Shown one piece after another: positions 2,460 to 49,862 of a DNA stretch of 64,000 nt. Location of the stretch: assembly GCA_965240325.2 (NCBI GenBank), contig OZ251253.1, forward strand, positions 496,001 through 560,000. Reading direction: 5' to 3'. The position numbers were made by a program, and so were the translations under genes. Within the stretch, counting starts at the first letter, position 1; each line of letters opens with the position of its first letter. Under the pieces are notes generated by a model that was not told where the DNA came from, searched no databases, and saw nothing but the letters and a program-made list of their open reading frames with translations. Source of the DNA: Rebecca billardiae RCC1528 (taxonomy: Eukaryota > Protista > Haptophyta).

Positions 2460-6473
<4,014 letters not shown>

Positions 6474-19359: not shown

Positions 19360-19686
19360 CGTACGATCCTGCGCCTGCGCGTGTGCGCCCCGCCCCGACG
19401 GCACCGGAGGTGCTCGATGGCGGCCAGTGTGTGCGCAGTGCACCAGCTGGCGCGTGTGTCGCCCGCCGGCGTGCCGAACGAACCCCGCGTGGACGTGGTG
19501 CAAGCCCGCGCGGCTCGCCACACGCCGGCCGCGGCCGCGGCCAGCACCTAGCTGTGCGGCAGCTGCCAGTGGCAGCGCCAGCTGGCAAGCTGAGCGGCAG
19601 CAGGACTCAGCCGGACTCACAAGTGTACCGTGCAACAGCGGGCCGATTCCCGCCCGTCGGCCCTCGCCCCGGCACCGCGCGAGCAA

Positions 19687-21759: not shown

Positions 21760-21986
21760 TTCATCAGCCGTGCAGCTCGGCCGATGATGCAGAGGGCATG
21801 ACGACGGCGATACATATATATATATATATATGCATATGATGATGTAAATAATAAGACCGACGATGACTGCGCTGCTGATGATCCGCGCTGCCGGCGGCCG
21901 GGCCGGCATAGCCATCGTCAGCCGTGAATATAGTTGTTATAACCGTCAGGCGCTGCGGCTGATGGCATACTCACACACGCCCCGCC

Positions 21987-24827
21987 CTAATAGTCCTCGT
22001 CCTCGTCCTCGTCGTAGTCCGTGCCGGAGCGCGACGAGCCGTCCGAGTCGTCGGTCTCGCTCTCCTCCTCGTCGGGGCGGCGCGTGCGCACCTGCTCGTC
22101 CGCGTCCGTGTACAAGTTGTCGAGGTCGATGCGGTCTGAGTCGAGCTCGTGGATGCGGAGATCGCGATCTCGGCGGCCGCGGCCCGGCCGGCGCGTGTCC
22201 GCGGGGTGCTCGGCCGCGGCGGGGCGGCGGCGCCCCGGGCTGGGCGGCGCGGCGTCGTCCGCGCCCTCCGCGCCGCCCTCGCCCTCCGCGCCGTCGCCGT
22301 CGCCGTCCGCGCCGCCGCCATTGTTCTGCTCCCAGGTGGTGGCGATGGCGCGGACCATCGCGTCGCCGCGGCCGCCGTCCGCCGCCGCCCACTTGCGGAG
22401 GAGCGAGAGCGGCGGCTCGAGCCCGTGGTGCGCGCGGTGCGGGTCGGCGCCTGCGCGCGCCGCGGCGCAAGCGTGGCGGCGCGACGGGGCACCGCGTGAG
22501 CGAGCGCGCGCGCGCGCGCGCGCGCACCCGCCGCCGCCTCGCGGGCGGCCGCGCCTGCGGCCCTGGCGGCGCGCGGCGCGGCGGCGCGCGCTCGGCGCAG
22601 CGCGCACCGGCGGTGACGAGGGTGAGGGCCGCGTCCGCCCAGCCCTTGGAGCACGCCATGTGCAGCGGCGTGCGCATCGATGCAGAGAGCGCCTCGACGG
22701 CCGCGCCTGCGCGCGCGGCGCGCGGCGCGCAGCGCGCGCGCGTGAGGCGCGCGCGCGCGCACGGACGGCGCGCGCGCTCGGCGCGTGCGGCGCACCGGCG
22801 TCGATGAGCCTGGAGACGATGGCGGTGTGCCCCGCGGCGGCGGCGGCGTGGAGCGGCGTGCACTTGGTGCGCAGCCCGCGCCGGTCCGTCAGCTTGCGCT
22901 GCACGCCCGTCGGGTCGTCCTCGCCGCGCTCGAGCAGCAGCAGCCGCCCCGACGAGAGCAGCTGCGCCGCGCGCGGCTCCGACGCGCCGCCGCCGCCGCC
23001 GCCGCCACCGAACCGGCGCGCCGCGGCCGCGCCCGGCGTGGTGGGCCGGCTCGCGCCGCCCAGCGGCGCGGAGCCGCGCGTCTCGCCGCGCGTGAGCGCG
23101 CGGCCGAGCTTGCCGCCCGGCGTGGTCGGCCTGCTCGCGCCGCCCGCCGTGCCGCGCGTCTCGCCGCGCGTGAGCGCGCCCGCCGCGCCGGTCGCGCGCT
23201 CGCGCTCGCACAGCCGCGCCTCCTCCGCGGCTGCTGTGAGTAGCAGCTCGAGCGCTGGCTCGGAGCCGACGAAGGCGGCGGCGTGGAGGAGGGCCTCGCC
23301 GGGCGGCGCGCCGCCCATCTCCTCGGTGGAGAGCCGCTCGTGCCGCCAGTGGCACAGCTGCATCGGCAGGTGCCCGTCCGCCGAGCCGACGATGTCGGCG
23401 ACCGCGGCCGCGTCCCGCACTATCAGCGCCGCCCACAGCTCTGCGGCGGTGCGGTCGGCGGCGGCGCGCAGCTCGTCGAGCCGCTCCTTCATCTCGTCGA
23501 GGTCGTCGGCGGGGGCGTCGAGGTGGCGCTCGGCGAGCGGCGCGCGGAAGTGGCGCGGCGCCGCCGCCACCGCGTCCTCCAGCAGCATGCGCTTGAACAC
23601 CGCCGCCTCGCCCGCGATCGCCTCCTGCGAGAGGACTCGGTTGTGCATCGAGAGCGCGCGCACATAGCACGCGTCGTAGTCGACGTCGTCGTCGTCGCGC
23701 CGTTCCTTTGAGTAGAGGAGGGCCACGCGCCCCTTGAGCGCGAACTGGCCGTCCTTGGCGACCTTGGGGTTGGTCACCTCGAGCGCCTGCTCGCCGTCCA
23801 CGTACGCGCGCAGCATGTTCGCCGACGAGTCGACGGTCACGGTGAGCACGTGCCACGTGCGGTCGGAGAGCGCCGGCGCGTCCGCGTCGCCAAATTCCTT
23901 CAGCGTGCCGACGTGGCCGTCACCGTCAACGCGCAGCTGCGCCTCCTCGTCGTTCTCCTTGGCGGCCGCCCACTTGTCCCAGCCGGCGGTGGAGAGCAGG
24001 TTGCGCGAGCGCGCGTCGAGCAGCTTCACGTGCATCGCCAGCGTGAACTGGTTGAGGTGCGTGCCTGCGCGCGCACAGCGCCGCGCGCGCGCGCGCGCGC
24101 GGGCGGGCGGGGGCGCGGGGCGCGCCGGGCGGCGGAGCGCCGGGCGGCGGAGCGGGCGCAGAGGTCAGGGCGAAGGCCGGCCGCGCAGCCAGCCCGCCGG
24201 CGGGGCGGCGGGGGCGGGGGTGAGGGCAGCCGGTGGGCCGGGGGGGGGGGGGGGGGGCGAGCGCGGCGCCCACGAGAGCGCGCGCGAGCCCGCGCCCGCC
24301 CAGCCCTCGGCCACGCGCCCGCCCGCGCGCGAGCGCGCCGCCGCGCGCTCGGCCGTGCCTGCCGCGCGGCGCACGCCCGCGCGCGCTCGCGCGCGTGAGG
24401 CGCGCACCGTTGCCGTTCTTGCGGAAGGGGACGCGGAGGACGAGGAAGGTGGAGGGCCAGCACTTGAGGCAGCGCAGCCCGCCCGTGCGCGCGTACACCC
24501 ACTTGCCCCGCCCCTCCACCCACCCCGGCCCGCCGTCCTGCGTCCCCACCTGCCCGCGCGAGAAGTCGTAGAAACTCGAAGTGCGAGTCGTGCGCGGGTT
24601 GGCCGCTGCCGCGCGCCGCGTCTGGCGCATCCACGCAAAGTCCGAGTCGACCATCTGCGACTCGAGCCGGGCGGTGGCGTCGGCGACGAGCTGGCGCTCC
24701 GACTCCTCGAGCGCCGTCTCGGTGCGCCGCTCCGCCTCCATCGTCCTGGCGAGCAGCGCGGCCAGCTCCGCCTCGCCCTTGGGCGCGATCTTGGAGGCTT
24801 GGCGCGCGAGCGCGCCGCCCGGCCGCG

Positions 24828-24858
<31 letters not shown>

Positions 24859-27800
24859 GCCGTCGCCGCCGCCGCCCGACGCGCCGCTCTCGGCGTGGCC
24901 GAGGTGGATCGCCTCGGCCTCCTCGGGCGAGACCAGCGCGTCGATGAAGTCCGCGTACCTGCAGCGCGCGGAGGTGCGGCGGGCGGGGCGGAGCGCGCGC
25001 GCGCGCGGGCACGCGGCGGGTCGGCAGTTGGCGCGGCTGCTCTCGAGAGCGCGGTTGGTGCGTGTGCAGCGGCGCAGCGCGGCCGGCTGGGTGGCCGACT
25101 GGCGCGGACGGCGGCCACGGCGAGCACGGCTGCCAGCTCGCGCGCAGTCGCAACGCCCGCCCCCCCCGTGCGTGTGCGCCCTGTGCCCGCGCCACGCTGC
25201 CCGGCGGCACGCGCCACGCCGCCCGCGCCACGCCGCCCGCGCCGCGCCGCGCCGCCCGGCGCCGCCCGCCCGCGCGTGCGCCGCACGTGAGGTGTCCCGC
25301 CGCCGTGATCGATCGGACGAAGAAGAGAATGTCCGCGGGCGAGACGTCGGGCACGTCGAGCCAGTCGAGCGCGCCCCACACCTCCGCGGGCGAGAGGATC
25401 CCGTTCTGGTCCGCGTCGAACTTGGTGAACGCATCTGTTGCGGCGCGCGCGAGCACGCACGCGCGCGCGCCACGCGCGCACGCACACGCGCGCGCCACGC
25501 GCGCGCGAGCGCGGCGGCGGCGCGGCGGCGGCGGTGGGACGACGTGGTGAGCCGCGGCGCGACGGGGGCGGCGTGGCGTGCGACGGCGGCGGGCGGCGCG
25601 GAGCGAGGGCGCGCGCGGCCGCGTCGGCAGCGCCGGCCGTGCGGCGCGCCGCGCGCACCGTGCAGCATGAGTCCCTTTGCCTTGATCGCCTCTCGCACGC
25701 GCACCGCCTGCGCGCGCTGCTTGAGCAAGCTCCACTCGTCCTCGAGGGTGAAGAGCTTGGCGAGCGGCGTCTGCTCCCAGCGCTTGGACATGCGGCGGCG
25801 GCACGCGAGCGTCATCGAGAACCAGATGCGCCGGCGCGCGGGCTCGGCGGGGATCGAGCGCAGCAGCAGGTTCAGCTCTGCTGGCGTGAAGTGCATCGAG
25901 CAGTCGATGAAGCGGCAGCAGTTGTGCGCCGCCGCCGCCTGGTAGTCGAGAGGCGGCCGCCAGCCCGCGCTCGCGTCGAGCACGGTGTCCTGCGCGCTCA
26001 CGCAGCGGAGGGCGACGGCGCAGTCCGCGCCGGGGACGAGCGCCTCGCCGCGCGCCTGGCGCAGGTGCAGCGCGCAGCGCAGCGTCTCCGCCTCCGCGAG
26101 CGAGAGCACCACGCGCTGCCGCCCCGCCTCCTCGCGCCGAAACTCGCCAGAGGTGAGCACGCGCGTCAGCTGCTCGAGCGTGAGCGCGCGCCCGCCGCGC
26201 CGCCCGCCGGCGGTGCCGGCGCTGCCGGCCGCGCGCGCGCCCGTCGCGGGCGGCGAGGCGGCGGCGGCGCCGTTGGCGGCGCGCGCGCCGCCCGCGCGCG
26301 CGCCGCGCCCGAACGGCCACCAGCCGCCGCCGCTGCCCGTCGAGCCGCCAGAGTCTGAGCCCGCGCCGCCGCCGCCGCCGCCGCCGTCGTCTGGCCCGCC
26401 GCCGCCCGCGCCGCCGCCGCCGCCGCCGCCGCCACCGCCGCCGGCGGAGCGCAGCAGCTGCTGCAGCTCGGGCTCGGAGAGCGCGATGTCCTCGGCGGAG
26501 CGAAGCGCCTCCACCACCTCCGCCACCTCAAACTGCCCCGAGCCGTCCACGTCAAGCAGTCGCAGCGCGTTCCGCAGCTTGGCCGCCTGGCGCTCGCTCA
26601 GCTCGGAGCGGCGCGGCGGCGCGGGCCGGAGCTGGGCGAGGGAGGGCACCCAGTCGAGCGCGCACACGACGTTCTTGAGCCGGCGCTCGCCCACCCAGTG
26701 CAGGTCGAAGTAGTTGCGCGCGATGTGCAGGTGCGCGGGGAACGGCAGCGCCGATCGCGAGTACAGCCGGAACTGCGAGGCCGGGTAGAAGACACCCGAG
26801 GAGAACGGCTCGGACGCGGACGCGAGCGCCGACAGCGGCCAGCGGCGCGGCTCCTCGCCTGCCGCGTGCGAGCGCGCGGGGCGCGGGGCGGCGGCGCGCG
26901 AGGGCGCGCGCGCGCGCGCGCGGGGCAACGGGCGGGCGCGTGTGGGCACACGCACGCGCCGCCTGTGCGCGCGCGCGCAGAGAGAGCAGGCCGCCCCGCG
27001 CCCTGTGCGCGCGCGGCCGGCCCTCGCTGCCCCGTCCCGTCGCGTGCGCGTGCGCGTGCGCGTGCGCGTGCGCCGCACGCACGGCGCCGCCCCGCCGCCC
27101 GCGTGCCGCGTGCATGCGCGTGTACGCGCGCGCGCGTGCGCGTGCGCGTGCGCCGCGCGCACGCACCGTCGCGCTGATACGCGAGGTCGGCGTAGCGCTC
27201 CATCTCGATCTCCTGCTCCTGCTCCTGGTCGCGCTCCTTCTCCGCCTCCTGCTCGCGCATCTGCTCCGTCTCGATGGCGGAGACGCCCTCCGAGGAGGCG
27301 ACGGACTGCGGGGGCGCGGGGCGGAGGAGGGAGGCGCGCGGCGTCGGCCGAGGGCAGCGCGCGCGCGGCGGCCACGCGCACGGGCACGCGCACGGGCACG
27401 CGCGCGGCGCGAGCGAGCGCGCGCGCTCGCTCGCGCGCGCGCGGCGCCGCGCTGCTCGGTGCTCGGCGCTCGCACCTTGAGAACATTCTCAACGACGGCC
27501 TCGTCCGCCTTGGTGCGGATGAAGTCGACGAAGCCGTCGCGCCGCTCGGCGAGCACCTCGACGTACTGCCGCGGCATCGGAAGTGTCTCGGAAACTTCCG
27601 TGTCCACGTCCTCGATGAAGACGTCGAGCGCTCGGCCGAGCGTGTCGCGCGTCTCGACCGAAGAGCGGCGGCCGCGCGCGCCGCCCGCGGCGGCGCCGCC
27701 GGAGGGCTCGCGCGAGGCGGGCCTGCTCCCGCCCGCGCCCGCGTGCGCCACGCGCGCGTTCACGGAGAGAGACAGCTCGCCCGTGCGGCGCGAGGCGGCG

Positions 27801-30800
27801 CCCTCCGCGCGCAGCAGCTCGAGCAGCTCCTGCGCGCTGAAGAGCACCGCAGAGGTCGCCTTGTGCAGCCCCGAGCGCTCGGCGCGCGGCACGAGCGCCT
27901 CCAGCCCCGCGAGGTCGCGCAGCCCGATCGCCAGGCGGAGCTCGTCCTCGATCGCCGCGCGCGCCTTGAGGTGCGCCCAAGGGAACTCGGTGAAATGCGG
28001 GTAAGGGTCGATGCCGAGCGACGACGCCTTGGCGGAGAGGCGCGCGCGCTTGAGCGCGAGCTGGCGGTCGAGGTCGCGCGTGCGCGCGGCGAGCCGTCGG
28101 TCGAGCATCTGCACCTTCTGCCGCTGCGGCTCGGACGCCTGCGCCGCCGTCGCCGCGTCGGTCATCGCCACCACCCAGCCCAGGAGCGCGCGCTCCGCCG
28201 CCGTCAGGATCACCGGGACGCCGCCGCCGTCGTCGGCCAGCTTGAGCGCGCGCGCGGAGAAGAGCCAGCCGTAGGTCTCGTCAGAGCCGCCGCCGGCCGC
28301 GCCCTCGTCCTCCTCCTCCGCGCGCCGCTCCGGCCGGATGCGCGCGGGCGGCACGCGCGGCTCAAAGTCGCCGTCGTCAAACTGCACGTCGTATAGCGTG
28401 GGCACGCCGGCCACCGGGGAGTCCACCACGCTGGCGATCTCGCCGGGGTACCACGTGCCCCAGCCCTGCCAGTTCGCCTCGACGCGCTCGCCGAGCCCGA
28501 ACGCGCCGCCCGTGCCGTCGTCGTCGTCCTCCTCCTCCTCCTCCTCGCCCTCCACTTCGCTGTCCTCGGCGCCGCGCCGCTCCCGCCGCACGCGCGCGGG
28601 CGGCACGGCGGCCTCAAAGTCGCCGTCGTCGAACTTCACGTCGTACAGCGGCGGCCCGCCCTCCGCGTCGGGCTCGGTCACCTTGGCGATCTCGCCGGGG
28701 TACCACGTGCCGCCGCCCTGCCAGTTCGCCTCGACGCGCGCGCCGACGGCGAGCGCGCCGCCGCCGCCCTCGCCCTCCGCGTCCAAGTCTGCGGCCGCGG
28801 CGGCGGCGGCGGCGGGCGCGCCCGCAGCGGCGGCGGCAGCGACCGCGGCCGCGGCGCGCGCCTCGGCCGCCTCGCTCGCGGCGGCGCGCGCCGCCTTGGC
28901 CTTCTCCCGCCGCTCCTTGGCCGCGTCCTTGAGCTCGCGCCGCTTGCGCTCGCGCTCGATCAGCGCGCCGCGCAGCGCGTCGCCGACGCTCGCCGCGGCA
29001 GGCAGCAGCTCGGGCGAGCGCAGCTGCGCGGTCACCTTGCGAAGCTGTCGCGGCTGCAGCGCCGCAGGGTCGAGCGCCGCGAGCGCGGTGGGCTCGGCGA
29101 GCGTGTCGAGCGCGCGCCGCGCCGCGGCCAGGTGCGCAAGCAACTTGAGAGCCTCCTCCTCGTCGTTGAGGCAGCGCTGCAGCGCGACAAGCATCGCTGC
29201 GCGCGGCACGGCGGTCTGGCCCCGCGCGCGCAGCCCCTTGCGAAGCGCGCGCAGTGCGAGGGGGTCGACGTCGGCGGGGAGGCCGTGCGCCTCGGCGGCG
29301 ATGGCGGCCTGTAGGTCCTCGTCCAGCTCGCGCTGCGCGGACGCCGCCTCCGCCTTCACCGCCTCGAGCTGCTTCTGCTTGCGCACGAGCTCGCCTGCGC
29401 GCACGGCGCGCGCGGTGGCGTGTGCGCGCGCGCGGTCTTCGGAGTGAGCGCGCGCGGTACGCACGCGCGGGGGCGGCGCGCCAAGACAGCAGGGCCCATC
29501 CGCGCCCAATCCTGACCCCCGCGTGCACGCACGCGCACATGCGCACGCGCACACGCGCGCGCACGCGCACGCGTACGCGCACGCGCACGCGCACGCGCAC
29601 GCGCACGCGCACGCGCACGCGCACGCACACGCGCGCGCGCGCGCGCGCACGCACGGCCGCACGCGCACCGTATGCCTCGAGGTACTCGCCGAGCGCCTTG
29701 GCCCACTGCGCCAGGTAGCGCACGCACGTGTACTGCTGGTACGCCGAGTTGGGCGTGCGCTGCGCCGTCACCATCGCGTGCTCGATGCCGTTCCCCAGCT
29801 GCACGAGCCGCGCCCACTCCTCAGGCCGGAGCCGCCCCGCCTCCGCGTCGTCCGCGAGCTCAGTGACGCGGGCGCAGAACGCGCCGAAGCCCTGCGCCGG
29901 CAGCTTCTCGTTCTGGAAGCCGAGCGCGCGCTTGACGCGCACGGTGAGCGGCTCCTTGGCCGCGCGCTCCTCCTTCTCCTTGGCAGACTCCTTCCCCGCC
30001 GCCGGGTCGGCCGCGTCGAGCGCCTTGAGCGTGAACGTGAACGCGTCTCGACACAGCTCGTCGCCTTCGAGCAGCGCGGGCGTGCGACACAGCAGCTCGA
30101 ATGCGCCCTGCTCGTACGAGTTGATGTACCCCGCGGTGGAGCGCACCTGCTCGAGCAGCGGCGCGACGATGCCCTTGGACGCGCGGATGTCCTTCTCGAG
30201 GATGGCGCCAAACTGCTTCATCCGCAGCAGCCGCGACTGCACCGCCTCGACCGAGGCGCCGGCGTCCTTGGCGCGCGCCGCGCCGCCGCCCTCGTCCTCG
30301 TCCTCGCCGTCGGGCTCGGGATCGTTGCCGTCGTCGCCCGAGGCCGCGGCCGCGTTGGCCGTCGCGGCGATCGCGACGACGGCGGGCAGGTCGTCGACGC
30401 CGTCGAGCCCGAGGAAGTCGCACGCGCACGAGCACACCGCGGCGAGCGTGGCCGAGGCGGACGTCTTGGCGGACGCGGCGCGCGCCTCATCCGCCGCCTC
30501 CGCATACGCGTGCAGTGCGAGCACCCAGCCGTGCAGCGCGCCCGCGGCCTGCCCGCCCTCGCGCGCGAGCGCCGCCTCGGCGGCGGCGGCGGCGGAGGCG
30601 TACCGCTGGAGCGCGCGCGCGGCGGACGGCGGGATCGCATCTCGCTCGAAGCGCGCGACGCGCGGCCCGAGCGCGGCGGGCTGCAGCGCCTTGGTGGCGA
30701 ACGTGGCCCAGTCCGGCTTGAGCGAGAAGAGCGAGGCGCACGTCTCGCCGAGCGCGCGCAGCTTCTCGCTCGGCCCCTTGGCGGCGGCGAGCGCGTCGAG

Positions 30801-33800
30801 CGCCTCGGGGCGCAGCCCGCGCACCGCCTCGACCGCGCCGCCGTACGCGGCCGCCGCCGCGTCGAGCGCCGCCTGCGTCTCGGGCGGCAAGACGGGGAGC
30901 GCGCCGAACGCGCCGATCTCGCGCGCGCCCGCCTCGCCCAGCGCCTCGAGCCCGCTGTTCGCGTCGGCGACGAGGTGGAGCACGGGCTTGGCACGCGCCT
31001 CCTCGCGCGCGAGCGCGCGCGCCTCCTTCGCCCGGACCTCCGAGTCGTGCGCCGAGTCCTTGAGCCGCGTCTCGTGGTGCTTGTCGGCCGCCTCCCACGC
31101 GGCGGCGAGCTGGATGAGGCGCGCGCCGTCGCGCGTGATCGTGCGCCCGTCCACGTCCAGCAGCACCACCGCCGGCGCCTCGGGCCGCGGCGGCACGTTG
31201 AACGTCTCGCGCAGCAGCTTGCGCCGCGCCGAGTGCGAGTACGGAATCGCCAGCCACGGCATCTCGGAGATCTCGTCGACGAACTGGTCGGCGGTGGACG
31301 CGGCGGAGACAAAGACGATTGCCAGCGCGTCCTCAAAGTGCGCGTGGCACGAGCGCAGCGCGTGCGTCAGCCCGATGCCCACCTGCGTGGCGAACGCGCC
31401 GCCGCCGCCCTCGTCGACCGCGCCGAAGAAGAGCGCGACCGTCTTGTCCTCGAGCACGCCGCGCCCGGTCGTGCCGAGCTTGGGCGAGATGAAGGCGTGG
31501 CCGAGCGAGTCGAGCACGTACGCGGACGCGTCGTCGTCGCGCACCTTGAAGTGCGTGTAACCGCCCATCAGCGCGCCAAACGCGTTCTTGCGCCACACGT
31601 TGGCGAGGTTCTGCGCCATCAGCTGGTCGTACTGCGTCGCCTCAGTGCGCATCGAGTTCACCACCAGCCACGCCGCCACGTCGTCGAGGCGGAGCGGCGC
31701 CGGCTCGCCGCCGAGCGCGGCGGAGGCGAGCGGGCCCGCGGCGGCCTCGGCGGGCGTGAGCGGTCGGCGCTGCACGCCCGCCTTGCGCAGCTGCCGGCAC
31801 ATCAGCCCCTGCACCTCGGGGATGAGCAGCAGCGACACCGTCTGCCCGCGGCCGATGCCGCGCATGCGGAACGCGCCCTGCGCGTAGTCGCGCCACACCA
31901 TATCCTTGCCCAGCGTGACGACCGCGCGCGCGTCCGCGTGCTGCGGGATGTCCATGCCCGTCGTGTGCACCTGCGCGCGCGCGGGGGCGGGCGGGCGGGC
32001 GCGCGCGCGCGCGGAGGAGCGGGGCGGTGAGGCATCGGCCGAGCGCGCGGGGCGGGCGCTCCGCTCGGCGCGCGCCGCGCCCGCCACCCCACCCACCTGG
32101 TCGAAGAATGTGAAGCGCTTCTGCGGCGAGATGCCGGACTGCGAGAGCTTGAGCACTCGGCCGGTGGAGCGTACGAGGATCATCTTCTGGTCGGCCTCGT
32201 CGAGAAAGACAACGCCCTCGCACCAGCGCGCGAACGCGGGCACGCGCAGCAGGAAGTGCGCGACCTGCGCGTTGTTCAGGCCGGTGATGAGCGCGCCCGT
32301 GTCGATCAGCGCGTGCACGCGGTGCGCGGACGTCGCGACGGCGGTGAGCAGCGACTCGACGGTCCAGCCGTGCGCCATCGCGGACCACGAGACGACGGCC
32401 GGGTCTGTGAGCACGGCGAGCATCTTGCCGTCCGAGCCCTCCTCGTACCCGCACCGGCCGAGCGCGAGCGGCAGCAGGTCGGACGGCGTGCCGGAGAAGC
32501 CGATGCGCCGTCCGAAGAGCATCTCCCCGCCTACCTCCTGCCCCGACGCGGAGATCTTGGTCACCTGGTGCTGCATGAAGGCGGGGAAGACAACCTCCTC
32601 GAGGTACCAGTGCACCGCGAGCGGCTGCGTGCGCAGCAGCCGGAACAGCTTGGACATCTGCTCGTCGTTCGACTGCTTGAGCAGCCAGAGCGGCACGACG
32701 ACACGCGCGTCGTCCATCGCGCTGCCCTGCGGCGGCGGCGGCCGCCGCCCGTCCGCGCCGTCGGCGGCGGCGGCGGCGGCGGCGGGGCGCGTCGAGCCCT
32801 TGACCATCCCGCCCGCCTGCTCAACCCAGTCCTCGAACATGATCGCCGACTTGCGCGTGGGGAACGGCCCCACCTCCTTCTCAAAGTTGGTGCGCACCAG
32901 GTTGATCACGTCGTCCTCGAAGTCGACGCGCCGCAGCCCCTCGTACCGGTACGCGAGCACGGTCAGCCCGATGATCACGTCGGGGTGCGCGAACTCGGAG
33001 GCGCGCGCGGGCACGTCCTTGCCCACGAACGGGATGGCGAGCTTGAAGCGCGAGCGCGGCATCATCGGCTCGGTCTTCTTGAGCCGGGCGTACTCCTCCT
33101 CCGTGAGCAGGCCGAACGTGACGCGCGAGATCTTCTGCAGGCAGTGCGGCAGCAGCGTGCCGAGCCACTCGGCGACGAGGTTGAGCATCTTGAACGCCTT
33201 GGGCGCGAGCACGCGCGCCGCGAGCGCGTGCAGCCGCCGCGTCGCGAGCTCGAGCTCGGCCGCCGACGGCGCGACGGGGCGCACCTGCCCGCCGCCGCCG
33301 CCGCCGCCGCCGGTGGCGGCGGCGCGCGCGCCGCTCGTCGTGAGCGGCGGGTCCGGCACGGCCTCGAGCGTCGCCTCGTCCCAGCGCGCGGAGCCGACGA
33401 GCGCAGAGGCGTCGCGCAGCACGTACGCCGACATCTGCTCCGCGTCCAGCCCCGAGATGTGCTGCGCCTCGAGCCACAGCTGCGCCCAGCGCGCCATCAC
33501 CGGCCGCATGCGCGCCGCGTACCACTCGTCGTTGAGCAGCACGAGGTGCGGCGACGCCTGCAGCGAGTGCGCGGCGTACCCCTCGTCGATCACGTCGCGC
33601 AGCTCGGCGAGGATGGCGTGCGCGCGCGTGGACTGCTGGAAGGGCACGCTCATCCGCCCGCCCGACTGCACGGCAAACACCGCGTCGAGCAGGTGGATCG
33701 CGAGCGTCCACCGCTCGGGCGAGAAGTCGAGCGGCAGCTTCGCGCCGATCGGGAAGTTGAGCTCCGAGCGCAGCGGGTGGAGCAGCAGGTCGACCTCGTC

Positions 33801-36800
33801 CATCACGAGCACGCCGCGGTCGACGAAGAGCTCGAGCACGCGCGCGAGCGCGCGCACGTCGCGCTCCATCGACGGGTGGTGCTTGCGCCGCGCGTCGCGC
33901 AGCACGTCGAGCTTCTCGAGCAGGCGCAGCTGCACGCTCTTGACGGACGTCGACGTGCACAGCACGACGCCGCGGTGCGCCACCGCCGAGCGCAGCTTGT
34001 CCACCAGCTCCCACGACGCCTCGGCCGAGCGGTCGAAGGAGAGGGTGAAGACGCGCTTGCGGATGATCGACGAGAAGGCCGAGCGCAGCGTCGCGCGCGT
34101 CTGCTCGAGCAGCGCCTGCGGCATCATCTGCACGACGAGCGAGTGGCCGTCGCCGAGCATGAGCGACAGGATCGGCGAGATCACCGTCGTCTTGCCCCCG
34201 CCCATCAGCATCTGCTTGACGAGCGGCTCGCCGCGGCGCACGCGCGCGGCGAACTCGGCGATCAGCTCGACCTGCGCCTTGCGCAGCAGCAGGTTGTGAA
34301 TGAACTCGAAGAGCAGCAGCCGCGGGTCGAAGACGAGCCCGCCCGCGGCGGCGGCGGCGGCGGCGGCGGCGCTCGGCGCGCCGTTCGCGCCGTGCGCGGG
34401 CGCGGCCGCCGCGGCCGCGGAGGAGGAGGGCGGCAGCGGCGGCGCGCGCTCGACGTAGTGCCGCCCGGTGCGCAACAGGTCCGCCAGCGCCTCGGCGCGC
34501 AGAGAGATGCTCGACGCGAGCTCGGCGGGCACCGCCGCCGCGGCCGCGGACGAGTCGGCGCGCGGCGGCGCGCGCGCCGCGGCGCGCGCGCCCTCGGCCG
34601 CCGCGCCAAGCGTGCGCGCGAGCCCGTCTGCCTCGGCGATGCAGCGGTTGGTCTGGCCGATGCGCGTGGCGTGGCACACCGTCGCCACGACGAGGTCGAA
34701 GAGCGCCGACGCACGCTCCGCGCTCACGAACGGGTTGAGCCGCATCAGGTCGTCCTCGCCGCGCGTGGAGATGAGCAGGCAGAAGAGGAAGTCGAGCGAG
34801 GCGTGCGCCTCCGCGCCCGCGCTCTGCCGCAGCGCAAACGCGATGCGCCGTCCGAGCTCGGCCATCTGCGCGGCCTCGGCGCCGCCGTCCGCGCCGCCGC
34901 CGCCGCCGCCGGCGCCGCCCGCCGGCGCCGCGCCCGCCGCCGCGGCCGCGCTCAGGTCGATCTTGTTCGCCACCTCCTCGATGCGAGGCAGCGCGCGCGA
35001 GACGTACGCGGCGTCCTTGGCGCGCCGCTCGCGCAGCTGCGCGAGCAGCGCGGACACGGCTGAGCCGGACTCCTCGAGCGCGGCGGCGGCGTGCGCGGGC
35101 TCGGACGGCCACGCGCGCGGCACGAGGGTGAGGCGGTGCGGCGCCGCGTCGTTCTGCTGCCGCGCGTACTGAGCCATGTCCGCCGACATGCGCTCGTGCA
35201 TGTCGCGCGCCACCTGCGGCACAGCGGCGCGGCGCGGCGCGCGAGCGGCGGGCGCGGCGCGGCGGCGGAAGCGCTCGGCCGGCGGGCGCGCGCGCGCGCG
35301 CGCGGGAAGGAGGGGGCGGCGGCGGCGCGGCGGCGCGGCGGCGCGGCGCGCGCGCTCGGCCGGCGCGCGGCGGTCGGCCCACCTTGGAGCCTGCGTGCGG
35401 GTGGCGCATCACGTCGAACGAGAGCTCGGCCGAGACGGCGCCGAGGCCGAGCTGCGCGCGCGGCACGCGCCGCACGTACGCGTCGAGGCCGAGCACGGCG
35501 AGCGGCTCGGAGGCGAAGGCGGCGCACTCGTCGGCGCTGGTGGAGAGGGCGACGTCCCCGAGCAACGCTCCGTCGACCGGCCGCAGTGGCCGCCGCGTGC
35601 AGCCGTAGTCCGTGACGAACGGGATGATCCACCGCCGGTTCGCCTGGCCGCTCAGGTCGAAGGGGCGCGCGGCGGGCACGTGCGCGTGCGCGATGCCGCC
35701 GCCCACGCCGTGCACGCCCTCGGCCGAGGGCGGCGCGAGGCCGGCCCACCAGTCCTGCACGGCGGCGAGCTCCTCAGCGCACTGCTTGTCCACCGCCGCG
35801 GTCAGCTCCTCCACGCCGCCGCCGCCCGCGCCGCCGCCGAAGCCGTCAAAGCCCGTGCGCGAGGAGAAGCCGCCGCCGCCGCCAAACCCGCCCCACGCGC
35901 CGCCGCGGCTCCCAAACATGCGCTCGCGCGTGAGCGCGTCCGAGCGGCGCTGCAGCATGCGCCGGCGCACCGCGGTGCGCAGCCCGGAGCCTTTGGGCTG
36001 CGAGAGCGCGCTCAGCTCGTGCAGCACGCCGCGCAGCAGCCCGCCGAGCGGCGCCTCCGCCCAGTCGCCGCCGGGCGCCACGCCGACGAAGATCTCGCGC
36101 CGGTTGTGCTTGCGTGTGTCTTCGAACGGCGGCAGGAACGGCCCGAGCAGCGGCTTGCGCGCGAGCGTGTGCAGCACCGAGTTGAGCAGCGACGGCTCAG
36201 ACGCGTCCGGGAAGAGCGGCAGCAGCATCGTGCCGAGCGACGCGGAGCAGTTGTCGTCGACCAGCCGCGCCTCGGTGCCGCCGCTCAGCAGCGAGTAGAG
36301 CAGCAGGAAGCCGCCGCCCTCGACCGTGTACGCCGGCGTGGGGCGCACCGTGTTGAGCGCGCCCACCAGGTTGACGAGCTGCTCCATCATGAGCGAGCGC
36401 TGGTGCGTGTACCTCATCTGCAGCTCCTCGAGGTACTTGAGCAGCTTGGTCGCGTCGAACTGGCGGAGCGTGTCGTCCCAGTGGCTGATCCACCGGTTGG
36501 GCGGCGGGCGCGCGGGCACGTCCACCGCGCACGCGCCGAGCCCGGCCGCCTCCGCGCGCAGCTGCGCGCGCCGGTTCTTGCACAGCAGCACGAGGTGCAC
36601 GGGCAGACGCTGCTCCTCGCGCCGAGGGTCTGCCGCGTCGACCACGCACCGGTTGAGCAGCGCGAGCTCCTCCTCCGCCGAGAGCCGGCAGTCCGCGGAG
36701 ACGAGCCCCAGCTTGTCCACGTAGTGCGCCATCTCGAGCGTGAGCAGCCACGGCATCCGCACGGGCGCGTCCAGCATCACAAACGAGATCTTGAGCCGGC

Positions 36801-37622
36801 ACGCGTGCGCGTCGGGGTGGTGGTCGATGTCGTGCCGGTTCGAGTGCATGTGCTCGAGGATGGAGCGCTCCTCGCGCGAGAGCGCCGTGTCGGTCGAGAC
36901 GGTGTCGACGAGCGCGACCACCGACTTGTAGTCGCGCGCGAGGAAGCGCAGCAGCAGCAAATACAGCGCGGACGCGAGCGTGGACGCGGAGAGGAAAGAG
37001 AGAGAGACGTGCACCTTGTACACGTAGTAGGGGTTGTCGATCTCCTCGAGCCACTGCGCCGAGCGGTCGAGCACGAGCTCGGTGGAGAAGGGGTACGTGG
37101 CGAGCAGCGGGCGCACGGGGAGGAACGCGGGCACGAGCACCTGCAGCTCGCCGTTCGACGCGTGCTCGAGCAGCAGCGAGTGCGGGATGCCCTCGAGCAG
37201 CCGAAGCGTCGCGGGCGCGCGCCCGCCGTTCGACACGAAGATGTCGGCGTGGTCGAGCGAGAAGAGGCGCACGAGCCCGTCGGGCCCGCGCCGCGCCTCG
37301 AAGCTGAGCTTGAGCCGCGGCAGCTGCACGAGCGCGAGCGACGAGCCGTCCGCGCCCACGCCCGCCGCGACCGCCTCGTCGTCGTCGGACGCGGGCGCGC
37401 GCGCCCACGCGAGCACGTATGCGAGCTGCTCCACGCGCGCAAACACCGACGCGAGCGACGCGAGGTACGAGCCGAGGGGCGCGTTGAGCAAGTCGAGCAG
37501 GATCAGCTCCGCGTCGGCGTAGTCGGCCGAGCCGGACGGCTGCGGCGGCGCGGAGGCGCCCGCCGCGGCGGGCGCGCCCGCCGCCGAGCCGGGCGGCGGC
37601 GCGGCGGCGCGCGCCGCGACCG

Positions 37623-37654
<32 letters not shown>

Positions 37655-40600: not shown

Positions 40601-42674
40601 CGCGCGCCCGCGCCGCTACCCCCGCCGCCGCCGCCACCGCCGTCGTCGTCCGTGTTTCGGTACTGCGAGTGCAGCGCAAAACGGCCGACGGAACGGGCGC
40701 CGCCGACGTAGGCCCAGCGGTTGACGGCGCGGCCGTCCTCGCCGACGCCGTGGTCGTCCGGGCCCACGCCGCCCTCGACGACGGCGGTGGTCCCCGTCGT
40801 CGCCGCCACCGCCACCGCCGTCTCCATGATCACGTCCAGCTGCCGCTGCGTCGCGCGCGTGCGCAGCCACACGACCAGCGAGCGGCGCGCGTGCGTGAGC
40901 AGCTCAAACAGCTCGTGCTCGGGCACCGCAAACTCGTCGGGGTACAGGTCCATGTTCCACTCGTGGCTGCGGGCGGGGGTGTGTGTGTGTGTGTGTGCGT
41001 GTGTGTGTGGGAGAGAGGAGGCATGCGCACGCCGTGAGCCGTGCCGCGCGCGCGCGCGGCCAGCCGCCCAGTGGCACGCGCCCCGGCGCAAGCAGCCGGC
41101 GGGGCAGCGGCCACCGCTGGGCCATGTGCGGGGGGGGGGGGGGTGTCGTGTGCAGGGGGGGGGGGCAGGGGCTCGTGTGCGCACCGCGTGGAGAGGAAGG
41201 CGAAGGCGGAGACGAAGGTGTGCGCGAGCGCCGCGTCGAAGCCCTCCTCCGACTTGCACCAGTACGCCAGCAGCACGTGCGCCTGGATGTTCGCCATCAG
41301 CTTGGTGTTCTCGTCCAGCGTCGAGTCGTCGATGCGCCCCTCGCACTCGGCGACCAGCTTGCGGTGCCACCCGCTCAGGATGGCCTGCCGGGGAGGGTTG
41401 GGGGGAGGGGGGGGGGGGGGAGGGGGGCGCGCGTGGGCGTGGGGGCGCGTCGTACCGGTCGGCGCGGGGGCCTACGGCTACGCAGAGGGCGCGAATACGC
41501 GCGGCCGCCCCGGAGCGCGCGCGAGAGAGAGCGCACGCGAGCGCGCGCGCGCGCACGCACCTGCAGCGGCCCGTGCAGCACGGCGCGCAGCTCGGTGCGG
41601 AAGGCGGCGAGCAGCCCGCGCACGCTGCGCAGCTGCTGCGCCGGCAGCCCGCGGCACTGCGAGAGCGCCAGCGTCTCGTGCGAGCCGTCGGCCAGCTTGA
41701 GCAGCAGCGAGAGGTGCGCGTCCACGCGCGCGCACAGCCGCAGCACGTACAGAATCACGGTGGAGGTGCTCGCCTTCACGTGGCCCGTGTCCAGGTCCAC
41801 CGCCTGCGGGGGGGGCGGCGGCGGCGGCGACGGGGGCGGCGCGTCGGCCGGGCGGGTGAGCGTGAGCGCGCGCCGGGGACAGCCGGCGCCGCGGGCGGCG
41901 GGGGAAGGGTCGGGGCCGCCGAGAGGGCGCGCGGCGCGGGCGCAGGCGGCGCAGCGCACGCCCCCCCCCCCCTCTCGCCCCCCCCCCTTCTCTCGCGCGC
42001 GCGCCTGCTTGGCCAGCCGCACGAGGCTGGTGCGCAGCACGGCGGGCGAGTGCACGAGCTCGTTGAGCAGCAGCCCGTGCGCCGTGGCGAGCAGCGCGGG
42101 CTCGGAGGTGGGGACGTCCGCCACCTCCGAGCCCGCGTGCGCGAGGGGCAGGTGGTGGGACGGCTCGAAGAAGGCGCCGTCCAGCACGTCCTGAGAGCGC
42201 ACACACGCGCGCACACGCACGCGCACACACACGGCCCAGCACACACACACACACGCACGCACACATGCACGCACACGCACACACACACGGCGCAGGGACG
42301 GGCGTTATGCGGGTGAGCGGCGGCAGCGGTGGGCGTGCGGCGCCGCGGTGTGCGCGCGGCGGCGCCTGCCTCGGCCCCAGGGCACCGCACCCACACACAC
42401 ACACACACACACCGCGCTCCGCACCTGCAGCTTTGAGCTCTGCAGCGCGTGGATGCGGTCGCTCTGCGAGAAGAAGGCCGCCAGCAGCGGGATGCGCAGG
42501 TAGGGCGCGGTGAGGTACGACAGGAGGAGCTCCGAGTCGTGCTGCCCCAGCGCCTTGGCGTTGCCCACGTCGAGCGAGCCAAAGTCCGGGAGGTCCCACA
42601 TGTGCAGCACGTCGTCCTCCTGCGAGCGGCAGCCGGCCGGCCGGTGTGCGCGGCGGGGCGGCGCGCGGCGGCAT

Positions 42675-42706
<32 letters not shown>

Positions 42707-45015
42707 GCGCGTGCCGCGCGCGGCGCGCGCGCACGGGGGAAGGGGCGGAGGCGGCGACGCGTGAGCGCGGGCGGCGCGGACGCGCTCTACGGGCGCGCGG
42801 CCCCGCCCGCGTGCCGCGCGCGTGCCCCGCGACCACGCGCGCGCGCGCGCGCGCGCGTCCGCGCGCGAGGCGCGCGTGGCGGGCAGGCCGGGCGCGAGAT
42901 TGCAATCTCGCGCGCGGCGTGCGCGAGATTGCAATCTCGCGCGCGCTGCGTGCGCGCCCCACGCACCGTCTCGGCGTAGTAGGGCTTGGTGTACTCGGAC
43001 GGGAGCGCGAGCGGCGGGAAGCGGTACGCGGGGGGCATCTCGCCGCGCCGCAGCTTCGGCCGCGTGAGCAGCTGCATGCCGTCGTACCTGCGCGCGCGCG
43101 GGCGGGGGCGGAGCGCACCTCAGCGCGCGCTCGGCGCGCGGCGGCGGCGCGGCGGCAGCGGGCGCGGCTCGGCGCGCGGCCGCGCGGCGCCGCACCCCTT
43201 GACGATGAAGCGCTTGAGGTCGGGCTTCCACTCCCAGAGCAGCTCGGCGTGGCGCTGCGTGTACGCCGGCTCCTGCGTCTGCGGCAAGTAGTCCGTCTGC
43301 GGGTTGAGGAACAGCTTGAGGTAGTAACCGACGTCGCGGTACACGGACCATTCCGGAAAGTTCTTGCCCACGAGCGCGCGGTCGTCCGACACGTAGAGCG
43401 GGGTGATCGCCTTGCCGAGCGGGAAGGCGAGGCAGCGGCAGAGGCCCTCGAGGAAGCGCGAGACGCCCGACTCGAGCTTGTCGCTCTTGTCCCAGTTGAA
43501 GATCGCCGTCGTCTCACCCGCGATCCCCTCGAAGTAGTCGAGCGCTCGCGAGCGCGCAATGTTGAGCTCTGGCGAGTGGCACACGACGGTGGCGGCCTGC
43601 TTGGCGAGGTTGCCCGGCGTGTACGCGTAGCCGCGGCCGGGGTTGGCGAGCTCGGGCGGGCCCGCGCCGCCGCCCATCAGGTGCAGCGACACCGCGCTCG
43701 GCGCGTCCACCGCCGCCTTGCGGATCACCGCGTCCGCCACCGCCGCGATGCAGAGCGCCACCACCATCCGCACGCCATCGATCGGGCGCGTGTGGTCCTG
43801 CGAAAAGACGGACGCGGCGAAGTGCTCGAGCACGCGGCGGAGCAGCGTGAGGCACTCGAGCTGCGTCTCGTAGTCCACGTCTGCGCCGCGCGGGGGAGGC
43901 GGGGGCGCACGCGCGTGAGTGCCGGGCGCGGAGGCGGCGGGGCTTTGCAGTGCGCAGCAGCCGAGCCGAGCGACGCGCGCGTCCACGCGGCCGCGCGCAC
44001 CCTCCTGCCACACGCACGCCTTGCGCACGGCGGGCGGCGCGTTGGGCGGCTCGGGCATCGGCAGCAGCGAGGTGAAGGTGTGCTGCGCCAGCGCCACCAC
44101 CAGGTACGCCGTGTTCTTCACCGCGTGGCTCTGCACCGCGATGAGCGTGCACAGCTTGTCCGCGTGCCGGATGGCAGCGACCGCCTCGACGATGGAGCGC
44201 ACGCGCGCCGGCTGCTGCAGCAGGTCGATGGGCACGTAGGTGGGGAGCAGCGTGTGCGCGCCCGCGTCGACCGGGCCGCGGCGGAGCAGCCGGTCCGCCA
44301 GCGCGTGCAGCTGCGGCGTCGGCGGCGGCGGCGGCGTCGACCACGGGAAGCGCATCGGGTGGCGCATCAGCACGCGCACGCCGTCCGCCGAGATCAGCCT
44401 CCGAGATCGCCCCTCCAATAGCACGATCGTCGGGATCGACTCGACGCGGAAGAGCTCGCCGAGCTCGGCGCGCGCGCGCGCGTTGGAGAAGGGGACGGAG
44501 AGCCACGGCATCGTGCCGAAGTACGCCGCGTGCTCCGCCTCGTCGTGGTCGCTCGAGACGAGCACCACCTCGAACGCGTGGCCCGCGCGCCGAAGTTTCG
44601 CGTAAACTTCCTTGAGCGCGGGCGAGAGAGAGCGGCAGGGGCCGCACCACGACGCGCCAAAGTAGAGCGCGACGACGCCGTGCGCGGCGAGGGTACGCTC
44701 GGCGAAAACGTACTGCAGCGCGCTCCCCGCGCCGCCGCGCAGCGCGCCGCCCTCGCCGCCCGCCGCCTCGTCCGCCACGCCGCCGCCGCCGGCCGCCGCC
44801 TCGGCCGCCGCGGCCGCGGCCGCGACGGCGGCGACGCTCGCCGCGCCGCCGCCGTCCAGCGCCTTGGCGTCGACGGGCGGCGCGCGGCGCACGCGCGGCA
44901 GGCACTTCTCGTCGTCGCAGAGCACGTCGAGCTGGCCCACGCGCAGCGGGCCCGCCGCCTCGCCGCCCTCCGCCGCGCCCGCGCCCGCCGCGCCGCCGGC
45001 CGCGCCGCCGGCCGC

Positions 45016-45046
<31 letters not shown>

Positions 45047-48000: not shown

Positions 48001-48053
48001 GCGCGCCGGGCGCGCGCCGGGCGCGCTCCGTGTCTCTCGCCCTCTCCCCGCCT

Positions 48054-48097
<44 letters not shown>

Positions 48098-49862
48098 ACG
48101 CGAGGCCAGGGCGGCGGCCGGGCGCGCACCTTCGCGTCGCGCTCCTTCTTCGGCTCGAGCTTCACCACCGCGCACGTGCGCCCGTTCACATACGTGACCA
48201 ACTCGCCGGGCTTGCGCGTCACCACGAGCCACGCCCAGCGGCCGGGCTTCATGGCGGTCTCGGCGGTGCCGACTTGGCCGAGCGCGCCGACGCCGCCGTT
48301 CTTGAAGACGCCCACGGCCTCCTGCGCGCCCTTGCCCTCCGCCGCGGCCGCGGGGCCGCCCGTGAAGAGCGGCAGCGAGGTGGTCGGCAAGTTGTCCACG
48401 CTGCCACGCGCGGCGGCAGCGGTGCACACGCGCAGTGGCGGCGGCGCACACGCGCGGCGCGGCGCGGCGCGGCGCGGCGCGGCGCAGCGCGCGTGGCGGG
48501 AGGGATGACCGGCGTTGAGGCGTGGCACGCGCGCACGGCGCCGCCACACGCGCGGCCGCGGCCGCGGGCGGGCAGCGAGCTGCGGGGGCCAGCACCACGC
48601 GCACGCCACCGCGGCCACGCGCAGCGTGCACGCTGCCCGCCGCCGCGCAACGCGCCGCGCAACGCGCCGCGCAACGCGCCGCGAGCCGCGCCGCGAGCCG
48701 CGCCGCGCCGCGCGACTCACCGGATGGCGACCACGAGAGAGTACGTGTGCAGCTTGCCGTCTTCCTCCACCGACCACGACGTGATGCCGTGCTCGTAGCT
48801 GGCGCGCGCGGCGCGTGGCGCGGCGGCATCGCGCGCGCGTCGGCGGGTGGGGCCGCGCGCGCGCGCAGCGGGAGGCCGTGCGCGCGCGGGACGCGGCCGG
48901 CGCGCAGCGCGGTCGGCGCGGCCGGGCGGCGACAGCGACAGCACAGCGCGCACCCGAGGTTCATCGTGAGGTGCGCGCTGTCGTCCGTGGGCATCTGCAG
49001 CGAGGTCGAGCCGTCCTCGTCCGAGACGAGCGCCGCCTCGGCGCCGGAGGTAAACTGCAGGCCTGCGCGCGCCGACGGGGGCGCGAGCGCGCGCGCCGCC
49101 GACGGGGCGCGGGCCGCTGCGGTGTGAGCACGGCGGCGAGGCGCAGGGGATCGGGGCGGCGGCGCGGGGGCCGCACGCCGCGCGCGCGCGCACCCTCAGG
49201 CGGGCCCTGCCCAGCTCGGAAGTCCGCCACCAGCCCCACCCGCTCCGCCCAGCCCGCGCCGTAGCTGTACGAAGTGCCGCCGCTGTCGCGGCGCGGGCGG
49301 CGCGGGCCGACCGCCGGGCCTCCGAGCGACGAGTCGGAGTCCGAGTCGGCGCCGACGCCGACGCCGACGCCGTCGCCGTCCGCGTCCGCGCCGCCGCGCC
49401 GCGTCGACGCGCCCGCGCCGCCCACCACGCCCTTGGCCAGGTCGATGGTGCCGGCGCCCTCGTCGCCCTCGCCCCACGGAGCGATGCCGCCCGCTGCGGC
49501 CGACTGCAGCGCGGGCAAGGTGCGCGGGGCGGCGTGGGTTGAGCGGCGCGCTTGGCGCGGGCGGGGGCGCCGGGCACGCGCGGCGCGGGCGCGCGCGCAC
49601 GCTGAGGGCCCCGAGAGCGCCGCGCGGCGCGCGCGCGCACCTTGGCGTCGTCGTCCTCGCGCCCGTACCCGCCCTCGTCGTAGTCGTCGTACAGCCACAT
49701 CGGCCCGTAGCCACCGCCGTACCCGCCGCCGCGGCCGCGCTGCGACTGCTTGGCCAGCTTGGTGTCGGAAGCATTGTCGAATTCGGACTGCTCATTCTTG
49801 TTGTCCGTGCTGAACTGGCCCTCGTCACCGTCGTTGGCGCCGAACGGGGCGCCGCGGGGCAT
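21987..49862 (-). CDS. Giant (~7,148 aa, 32 exons) multidomain DUF3638/DUF3645 SF2-like ATPase with LamG, thioredoxin, dynein-MTBD-like, Tudor, EF-hand and ankyrin domains
   Basis: Manually spliced exons: 49862-49641, 49503-49194, 49062-48954, 48798-48721, 48400-48130, 47927-47357, 47084-46795, 46660-46337, 46058-45753, 45614-45299, 45083-44001, 43880-43196, 43087-42967, 42619-42425, 42190-42005, 41803-41561, 41384-41185, 40966-39814, 39573-39469, 39383-39250, 38958-38748, 38508-35383, 35213-32097, 31970-29669, 29394-27476, 27305-27167, 26858-25659, 25434-25287, 24958-24408, 24064-22796, 22706-22608, 22450-21987. Every junction conserves phase; the total is 21,447 nt. Motifs: LLFEFIHNLLLRKAQ...QMLMGGGKTTV (DUF3638) and LAIPFVGKDVPARASEFAHPDVIIGLTVLAYRYEGL (DUF3645). 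Confidence 0.85.

Follow-up and report, generated by a model that had tools for sequence, protein, structure and literature searches.

The window analyzed here is a 64,000-nucleotide stretch of the genome of the haptophyte Rebecca billardiae RCC1528 (contig OZ251253.1, positions 496,001 to 560,000), and it carries a giant gene of the DUF3638/DUF3645 family on its minus strand. The gene occupies 21987..49862 (-), from an ATG at 49862 to a stop codon at 21987-21989, and consists of 32 exons and 31 introns with a coding sequence (CDS) of 21,339 nt for a product of 7,112 aa. On sequence evidence, the interval 21987-49862 is confirmed as a single real protein-coding gene, as an initial annotation made from the letters of the window had proposed; codon periodicity, splice consensus and colinear homologues all bear this out. 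The 7,112-aa product is predicted to be soluble, without a hydrophobic segment long enough to span a membrane, and sequence comparison has shown it to be a member of a widespread, functionally unstudied family of giant eukaryotic DUF3638/DUF3645 proteins.

The window is ~78% GC and contains long stop-free stretches in all six frames. Because the sequence is 78% GC, a stop-free frame is weak evidence alone, and the claim of a single gene rests on the periodicity of GC content at third codon positions (GC3), splice consensus and homologue colinearity rather than on the absence of stops. Minus-strand GC3 is at least 0.95 and nearly unbroken from ~49.9k to ~22.0k, with the frame switching repeatedly. 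A dynamic programme written for this analysis, which scored codon usage and allowed GT/GC-AG introns, yielded a single chain of 34 exons that begins with the ATG at 49862 and ends with the stop at 21987 (model 1). This chain was revised against P0151, a relative encoded by an uninterrupted open reading frame (ORF), to produce model 2, to which the description of the gene refers. A model-1 '60-nt intron' at 24575-24634 was rejected in the revision and is coding, with its 20 residues aligning to P0151. An 81-nt 'intron' of model 1 at 45844-45924 was also rejected, the sole ground for the coding call being splice-site scores that were negative on both sides. One weak donor was shifted by 18 nt to the canonical aag/GTGCGA at 27476 (exon boundaries are marked by slashes). 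All 31 introns of model 2 are GT-AG, 85-347 nt in length and of GC content 0.86, and the splice consensus across the gene is very regular (G/GTGCG...GCAG/G). The coding frame contains only the terminal stop in 7,113 codons, the other five frames contain 11-141 stops, and GC1/2/3 of the CDS is 0.75/0.53/0.96. GC content falls to 0.48 upstream of the gene (~50500) and to 0.51 downstream (~21750); inside the gene the lowest value is at least 0.635 in 200-nt windows, and troughs occur at the two flanks only. The independently built model 2 arrives at the same 32 exons, 31 introns and ends (49862/21987) as the initial annotation, with the exons joined in phase without a stop as had been stated; the giant size also stands, and the length of ~7,150 aa is amended to 7,112 aa. 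Exons 1-2 (~first 150 aa) are based on the gene model alone and have no homologue support.

Six giant homologues (P0002, P0004, P0007, P0018, P0020 and P0027) are colinear with residues 406-6334 of the model, with scaffold blocks A-G in order. P0002 is the ORF of a Trinity transcript from Entosiphon sulcatum (4,668 aa), P0020 is a 'complete' ORF from a transcriptome-assembly record, and P0007 is a Paulinella gene model of 7,115 aa. Model 1 has 33 junctions, and 26 of these are spanned by high-scoring segment pairs (HSPs) to individual homologous proteins. P0151 is a 3,690-aa fragment encoded by one uninterrupted 11,073-nt ORF on an 11,328-nt JGI contig (L001) with ~250 nt of 3' flank, and it is colinear with aa 2912-6982, the C-terminal ~60% of the window protein, at 41-50% identity. 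Nine predicted junctions are crossed gap-free by P0151, including those that link the C-terminal LamG domain and the ankyrin repeats to the family part. The contig that carries it (L001 1-11328) is 64% GC and looks like a transcript, and its JGI sample number presumably belongs to a marine protist transcriptome series.

Intron 23 of model 2 (31971..32096 (-), 126 nt) is in frame and stop-free and lies within motif V of the motor core described below (FDQ/VHTTGMDI). Its removal restores the invariant motif V, and the HSPs over the junction are all gap-free (111 of 111). When the read-through sequence was folded with AlphaFold2 (AF2), the residues that the intron would encode had a predicted local distance difference test (pLDDT) score of ~29. 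The giant gene illustrates that genomes of 78% GC can hide in-frame, stop-free introns within 'ORFs', here inside motif V. A first search for RNA runs found none, and a second returned only runs with at most 12% of the locus words. Alignment of four runs to 21800-27700 gave mostly short, GC-rich chance matches together with two usable contigs. An exact 226-nt read contig covers the stop codon of the giant gene, and a 211-nt contig from a relative (probable RNA run) skips a net 170 nt that equals the corrected intron 25 (27306-27475). This skip is suggestive as support for intron 25, a hint only.

Membership of the DUF3638/DUF3645 family is indicated by successive Pfam matches to DUF3638 (PF12340; 115.4 bits, E 3e-33, cut-off 31) and DUF3645 (PF12359; 51.4 bits, E 7e-14, cut-off 25), both above their gathering scores, and by family scaffold blocks that are colinear on both sides of the core. 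The core exon matches 6,163 proteins of a representative library at E<1e-3, and the best 150 of these relatives are the representatives used for domain counts. At least 3,000 aa is reached by 52 of the 150, and the longest has 7,115 aa. Thioredoxin domains occur in 11 of the 150 representatives, EF-hands in five of ten giants, and LamG domains recur at either end; other family members add RanBP zinc fingers, UBA, WWE, MIB_HERC2, ZZ, ubiquitin or F5/8C domains. Relative to P0002 and P0142, the window protein has a ~1,200-aa insertion (aa 4563-5768) between the motor and block F. The first part of the insertion, with a second thioredoxin domain, is common to P0028 and P0134, and that domain plus a region resembling the dynein microtubule-binding domain (MTBD) is common to P0151. 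P0151 is the sole relative in which an MTBD-like module and ankyrins were detected; this protein (42% identical) has the same module order from the core to the ankyrins, but without Tudor domains. Judged by sequence, the window protein is new within the family by its unique Tudor pair and an MTBD module common to one database relative. The architecture had been put forward as undescribed. This holds for the Tudor pair, which was found in no relative, and does not hold for the LamG, thioredoxin and EF-hand modules or the giant size, which recur in the family, nor for the core-to-ankyrin order shared with P0151.

The family-specific block D (36646..37509 (-), aa 2669-2956) has a beta-rich part followed by a helical part, is 41-45% identical to the giants and was modelled by AF2 at pLDDT 77. 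Searches with Foldseek and VIA returned no PDB match for block D (best Z 5.2) and no known fold relative. Only a DUF3638-family cluster matches it in the Atlas. A separate ESM Atlas feature search gave just weak look-alikes among giant scaffold proteins. After the motor, at ~27170-27300 (-), lies a Glu/Gln-rich helix, ETEQMREQEAEKERDQEQEQEIEMERY, that is conserved in distant family members (alignments A2, A3) and might be an autoinhibitory or polymer-mimicking element. The functionally uncharacterised status given to DUF3638 proteins in the initial annotation agrees with a 2025 paper in which DUF3638 is still described as uncharacterised/undefined (PMC12615304), and a large microsporidian gene family carries DUF3638 (PMC5423893). 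The literature searched contained no functional study of the DUF3638/DUF3645 family, and literature searches on DUF6606 and on 'MTBD-like' in this sense returned nothing.

The motor core was delimited by the DUF3638/DUF3645 matches, sequence motifs and AF2 modelling at 31533..34331 (-) (aa 3672-4562), interrupted by intron 23. Motifs and modelled fold have shown it to be an intact two-RecA-domain ATPase of superfamily 2 (SF2), with ATPase activity predicted. It begins with RecA1 (equivalent to DUF3638), continues with a ~390-aa helical insertion that contains DUF3645 and then with RecA2, and ends in a long helix. Walker A (motif I, LMGGGKTT) is at 34185..34208 (-), with G, G and K invariant (alignment A1), and Walker B (motif II, DEVD) is at 33789..33800 (-), with the invariant LLHPL.SELNFP.G behind it. 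The segment that follows Walker B, DEVDLLLHPLRSELNFPIG, resembles the SecA signature DEVDSILIDEARTPLIISG. The full motif set occurs in order (Q-like, GGGKT, PxALLEQ, DEVD, SGT, HTTGxD, QGxFRMRGxGxGQ), so that motifs I, Ia, II, III, V and VI of SF2 are all represented; these motifs are invariant or nearly so across 46 family cores and are intact in the window protein. The DUF3645 motif (PF.GKD.PS..SEF.HPD..IGLT, 32961-33059 (-)) is the best-conserved non-ATPase motif of the family and is found in a low-confidence loop of the helical insertion; it may be a functional site.

The AF2 model of the core, built from a 46-sequence alignment, has a pLDDT of 83 and a predicted template modeling (pTM) score of 0.83. 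Its two RecA-like domains resemble many SF2 structures at Z 15-18. A two-strand exit leads from RecA1 into the all-helical insertion (model residues ~205-595) between motifs II and III, and a 46-residue helix (model residues 887-932) follows RecA2. Two architectural marks of SecA are present in the model: RecA1 is interrupted by an insertion after motif II and before motif III, and RecA2 is followed by a long scaffold helix. When searched against the PDB with Foldseek, the core matches SF2 enzymes generally; against the Swiss-Prot part of AlphaFold DB, SecA takes all of the first 30 places, with E values starting at 5e-7 and coverage of residues 19-930. VIA ranks SecA highest (Z 18.1, 517 aligned residues, running from residue 60 to 622), followed by eIF4A and RIG-I at Z ~16 with ~330 residues aligned. 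Identity between the core and SecA is ~10-14%. What is new here is that the DUF3638/DUF3645 core, as modelled, is an intact SF2 ATPase with SecA as its nearest structures. The core is SecA-like in its modelled architecture and is not a SecA family member, a wording chosen because the margin is modest and no SecA profile matches. PADLOC and NCBIfam searches with the core and the large exons gave no match, and PDB sequence searches with the core and its profile gave only weak matches to reverse-gyrase and PriA helicase motifs.

A dynein stalk/MTBD-like module is located at 30468..30884 (-) (aa ~4779-4917), within the insertion that follows the motor. A profile built from the window sequence and P0151 and searched against the PDB matched DNAH1 (8i3j_A) at E 1.4e-5, and ten of its 12 matches were dynein heavy chains at the stalk/MTBD. 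A single-sequence phmmer search of the PDB returned dynein heavy chains only, all at the stalk/MTBD, with E 0.11-1.3. The Pfam dynein microtubule-binding stalk (MT) model had no match in the insertion at E<=10. Significant similarity to solved dynein MTBDs was found with the two-sequence profile only, and the MTBD-like module of the initial annotation stands by that profile and fails by Pfam. Internal repeats of the MTBD-like unit were considered and rejected, as they did not rise above shuffled controls. We accept a single MTBD-homologous unit at aa ~4779-4917 on the strength of the profile matches.

Profile or homologue tests recovered every other module that had been named as well, in the order LamG, thioredoxin (WCGPC), DUF3638/DUF3645, thioredoxin, MTBD-like, two Tudor domains, EF-hands, LamG and ankyrins. 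The N-terminal LamG/ConA-like domain (48139..49036 (-), aa ~160-300, exons 3-5) matches Laminin_G_3 at E 3.3e-3 (exon 5 alone), below the Pfam cut-off, and by phmmer it matches the N-terminus (97-211) of the giant P0003 at E 6e-8. Thioredoxin-like domain 1 (44413..44679 (-), aa 1036-1124) matches Thioredoxin_8 at E 9e-22 (77.6 bits) and has the active-site CxxC as an intact WCGPC, with its Cys pair at 44635-44649. Thioredoxin-like domain 2 (31143..31445 (-), aa 4592-4692) retains the fold (Thioredoxin_8, E 2.9e-8, 34.4 bits) and has lost the cysteine pair, no CxxC being present in its sequence; a thioredoxin is found at the equivalent place in P0028, P0134 and P0151.

The two Tudor domains (28331..28753 (-), aa 5398-5445 and 5485-5538) were identified as two stretches matching Tudor_5 at E 4.9e-13 (49.1 bits, cut-off 31), with weaker matches to BAHCC1-like Tudor and Agenet profiles. 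Among solved structures, the tandem Tudor of UHRF1 comes nearest (E 0.07). Both copies contain W, W-Y, Y and F-D-D, which are candidate aromatic-cage residues by sequence. The pair was not found in P0151 nor in any of the 150 representatives, and a homologue search with the Tudor-bearing exon returned no match within the allowed length range. The two Tudors and their acidic linkers are near-identical, ~84 aa apart and within one exon. This pattern suggests that the pair arose by a recent tandem duplication within the exon.

EF-hand 1 (26467..26580 (-)) has the loop DVDGSGQFEVAE, which is canonical in sequence, and matches EF-hand_7 at E 4e-5 (24.3 bits, under the cut-off of 30). EF-hand 2 (25287..25434 (-), exon 28) has the loop DADQNGILSPAE and belongs to family block G. 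The strict canonical-loop pattern is matched by EF-hand 2 only (DADQNGILSPAE), with DVDGSGQFEVAE canonical-looking. EF-hand 2 aligns with the EF-hand pair of P0002/P0003, which is above the Pfam cut-off, and with P0151. The C-terminal LamG/ConA-like domain (23613..24579 (-), aa ~6446-6653; Laminin_G_3, E 2.6e-5) is split by intron 29, at a junction that is seamless against P0151, and is found at the equivalent relative place in P0010, P0020 and P0007. Two ankyrin repeats (22401..22874 (-), aa ~6900-6975) match Ank at E 1.2e-6 (28.9 bits), and P0151 also has Ank Pfam matches. Exon 31 (22608-22706, 99 nt, 33 aa) is exactly one ankyrin repeat; splicing yields TPLH...GA/GA repeats, and both ankyrin junctions are seamless against P0151. 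Between the C-terminal LamG domain and the ankyrins, a 78-nt coding tandem duplication (23030-23179 (-), 1.9 copies, 87% matches) results in a repeated LTRGETRG...ASRPTTPG linker.

Downstream of the giant gene, a neighbour at 18100-21550 (+) codes toward it, forming a convergent pair; its long ORFs match no Pfam family at E<=0.001. No Rfam family was found inside or near the giant gene. At 29528-29668, the start of the intron after a 2,302-nt exon is occupied by a (CGCACG)n microsatellite of ~23 copies, and several further introns of the gene contain GC-rich microsatellites.

Taken together, the locus is likely explained by one 32-exon gene encoding a soluble giant DUF3638/DUF3645 protein in which a SecA-like SF2 motor is combined with binding modules. 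Several points weigh against this explanation. Among the RNA runs searched, none truly covers the locus. The Pfam scores of the EF-hand and LamG domains are below curated cut-offs because introns split these domains, and the microtubule, methyl-mark, Ca2+ and redox functions are drawn from domain homology only. For the motor, no SecA Pfam family (SecA_DEAD, SecA_PP_bind, SecA_SW) matches at E<=0.01, and the profile search of PDB sequences returned no SecA, reaching just PriA-type helicase motifs at E ~0.5. The preference for SecA is modest (Z 18 vs 16, TM ~0.33). By our own reading of the alignment, motifs Ia and Ib (VVPxALLEQ, TPxxxKS) are more DEAD-box-like than SecA-like. In the model, the inserted domain consists of helices throughout, whereas the preprotein-binding domain of SecA is alpha/beta; this speaks against a PPXD fold.

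The mechanism that we propose for the combined modules is tentative and, taken as a whole, somewhat less likely than not. The motor would use ATP to clamp, or travel along, a linear polymer, which might be an unfolded polypeptide, as with SecA, or RNA, as with DEAD-box and RIG-I-like proteins; we give the two polymers roughly equal odds. Ca2+, bound by the EF-hands adjoining the motor, and thiol redox, acting at WCGPC, might gate motor activity. Docking on microtubules and on partner proteins, methylated or otherwise, would be the task of the MTBD-like, Tudor, LamG and ankyrin modules. The initial annotation had suggested a signal-integrating, cytoskeleton-associated ATPase, for example in cell-autonomous defence or in flagellar or haptonemal function; such a role is conjectural. 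A bolder version, which we regard as a long shot, is that the family as a whole consists of unrecognised eukaryotic cytoplasmic SecA-type machines that hold and thread polypeptides or ribonucleoproteins under Ca2+/redox control, with one algal paralogue having captured a dynein MTBD and methyl-mark readers. If true, this would be an SF2 remodeller or motor docked on microtubules, with no relationship to kinesin, dynein or AAA+ unfoldases.

Other explanations differ on what the motor does and on whether the giant product exists. It is possible, though on balance unlikely, that the motor is a helicase-type SF2 remodeller of RNA or ribonucleoproteins to which the Tudors recruit methyl-arginine proteins, as in TDRD9 and TDRD12, the animal Tudor-helicase proteins. 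Nucleic acids are the substrates of almost all SF2 enzymes, the scores of MDA5, RIG-I, eIF4A, DbpA and DinG are nearly equal to that of SecA, one homologue matches ResIII, and both the DEAD-box-like motifs Ia and Ib and the PriA helicases, as the sole sequence matches of the core profile, point the same way. However, SecA is consistently first with 70-190 more residues aligned, and the protein showed no accessory domain for RNA binding. As a late, lineage-specific addition that was found neither in P0151 nor in the 150 representatives, the Tudor pair says little on the ancestral substrate. A conflict or immunity sensor is a less probable role still, in which a fast-diversifying giant ATPase would sense non-self through variable accessory domains by a logic like that of RNF213 or NLR/STAND proteins. 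The family does form large paralogous groups, such as the microsporidian DUF3638 gene family (PMC5423893), and its accessory domains vary widely (WWE, UBA, RanBP zinc fingers, MIB_HERC2, ZZ, F5/8C, LamG). Yet no PADLOC defence model matched, effector domains of the death, TIR or nuclease kinds did not turn up, and the conservation of the core and scaffold blocks in distant eukaryotes fits a housekeeping machine at least equally.

AlphaFold DB clusters widely auto-name the family 'ubiquitinyl hydrolase 1', without a detectable peptidase domain. That the protein is a deubiquitinase, as this name implies, is very improbable. The name is borne by many AlphaFold DB cluster representatives of the core fold, and some homologues have UBA, ubiquitin, RanBP zinc finger, WWE, ZZ or MIB_HERC2 domains; but the name is an automatic annotation, and no OTU, USP or other peptidase Pfam match was found in the window protein or 12 giant homologues (E 0.01 for the ORFs and two giants, E 0.001 for ten giants). 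Block D, the best-conserved non-motor block, is also without a protease-like fold. The naming of the family is probably a propagated misannotation. We likewise give very little credence to the idea that the interval is made up of at least two neighbouring genes, or is a pseudogene, and that a single 7,112-aa product is nonexistent. The RNA runs searched did not truly cover the locus, stop-free frames are cheap at 78% GC, and exons 1-2 are without homologue support, all of which would suit several genes or a pseudogene. Against these stand the single proteins of other species that are colinear over nearly the whole length, the absence of any flank-like AT-rich trough inside the gene, introns that are all at most 347 nt, a GC3 of 0.96 throughout and catalytic motifs that are intact. 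One giant gene with a SecA-like motor and binding modules is the explanation that we favour.

In many protists, fungi and small animals, few proteins are larger than those of the DUF3638/DUF3645 family. Two results make the family testable: the intact SecA-like SF2 core, and the adjoining Ca2+, redox and (in this lineage) dynein-type MTBD modules. The main interest is in a family-level SecA-like motor and an MTBD homologue outside dynein, rather than in the single locus. A dynein MTBD homologue in a non-dynein protein is in itself of interest to cytoskeleton researchers.

Among known systems, SecA, the bacterial preprotein translocase motor, has in common with the window protein a DEAD-type two-RecA motor, a DEVD Walker B, a large domain lodged between motifs II and III and, behind RecA2, a long helix. 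The window protein is instead eukaryotic, without a membrane-spanning segment and ten times larger, and its inserted domain is helical. The DEAD-box and RIG-I-like helicases (eIF4A, DbpA, RIG-I, MDA5) share the two-RecA fold and the motif set (Z ~16), and motifs Ia/Ib are similar; ~330 residues align. In contrast to these helicases, which lack the family-specific DUF3645 motif, the window protein has no helicase Pfam match and no RNA-binding accessory domain. With the dynein heavy chain, the likeness is confined to ~140 aa that align to the stalk/MTBD of DNAH1, DNAH6, DNAH9 and cytoplasmic dynein, with the signatures PxxV...DW and A..L..WV.A...Y in common. The window protein is without AAA+ modules and without the long antiparallel coiled-coil stalk, and its binding to tubulin is putative. 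Thioredoxin domain 1 is like the nucleoredoxin/tryparedoxin-type thioredoxins (Thioredoxin_8) and has WCGPC; here it is embedded in a giant protein in which the cysteines of domain 2 are lost. In TDRD9/TDRD12 and RNF213, too, a single large chain unites an NTPase motor and modules for reading or binding. They are analogies only, as no sequence relationship was shown and the window protein contains no E3 or piRNA-pathway module. The closest likeness of order is to the giant DUF3638/DUF3645 proteins (such as P0002, P0007 and P0151), which have the same core, blocks A-G in the same order and, behind the motor, an EF-hand pair. Several family members have LamG domains at the N- and C-terminus and an N-terminal thioredoxin, as in the window protein, and P0151 also has the post-motor thioredoxin, the MTBD-like module and the ankyrins. 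Compared with its giant relatives, the window protein is set apart by long Ala/Gly-rich linkers that are specific to it.

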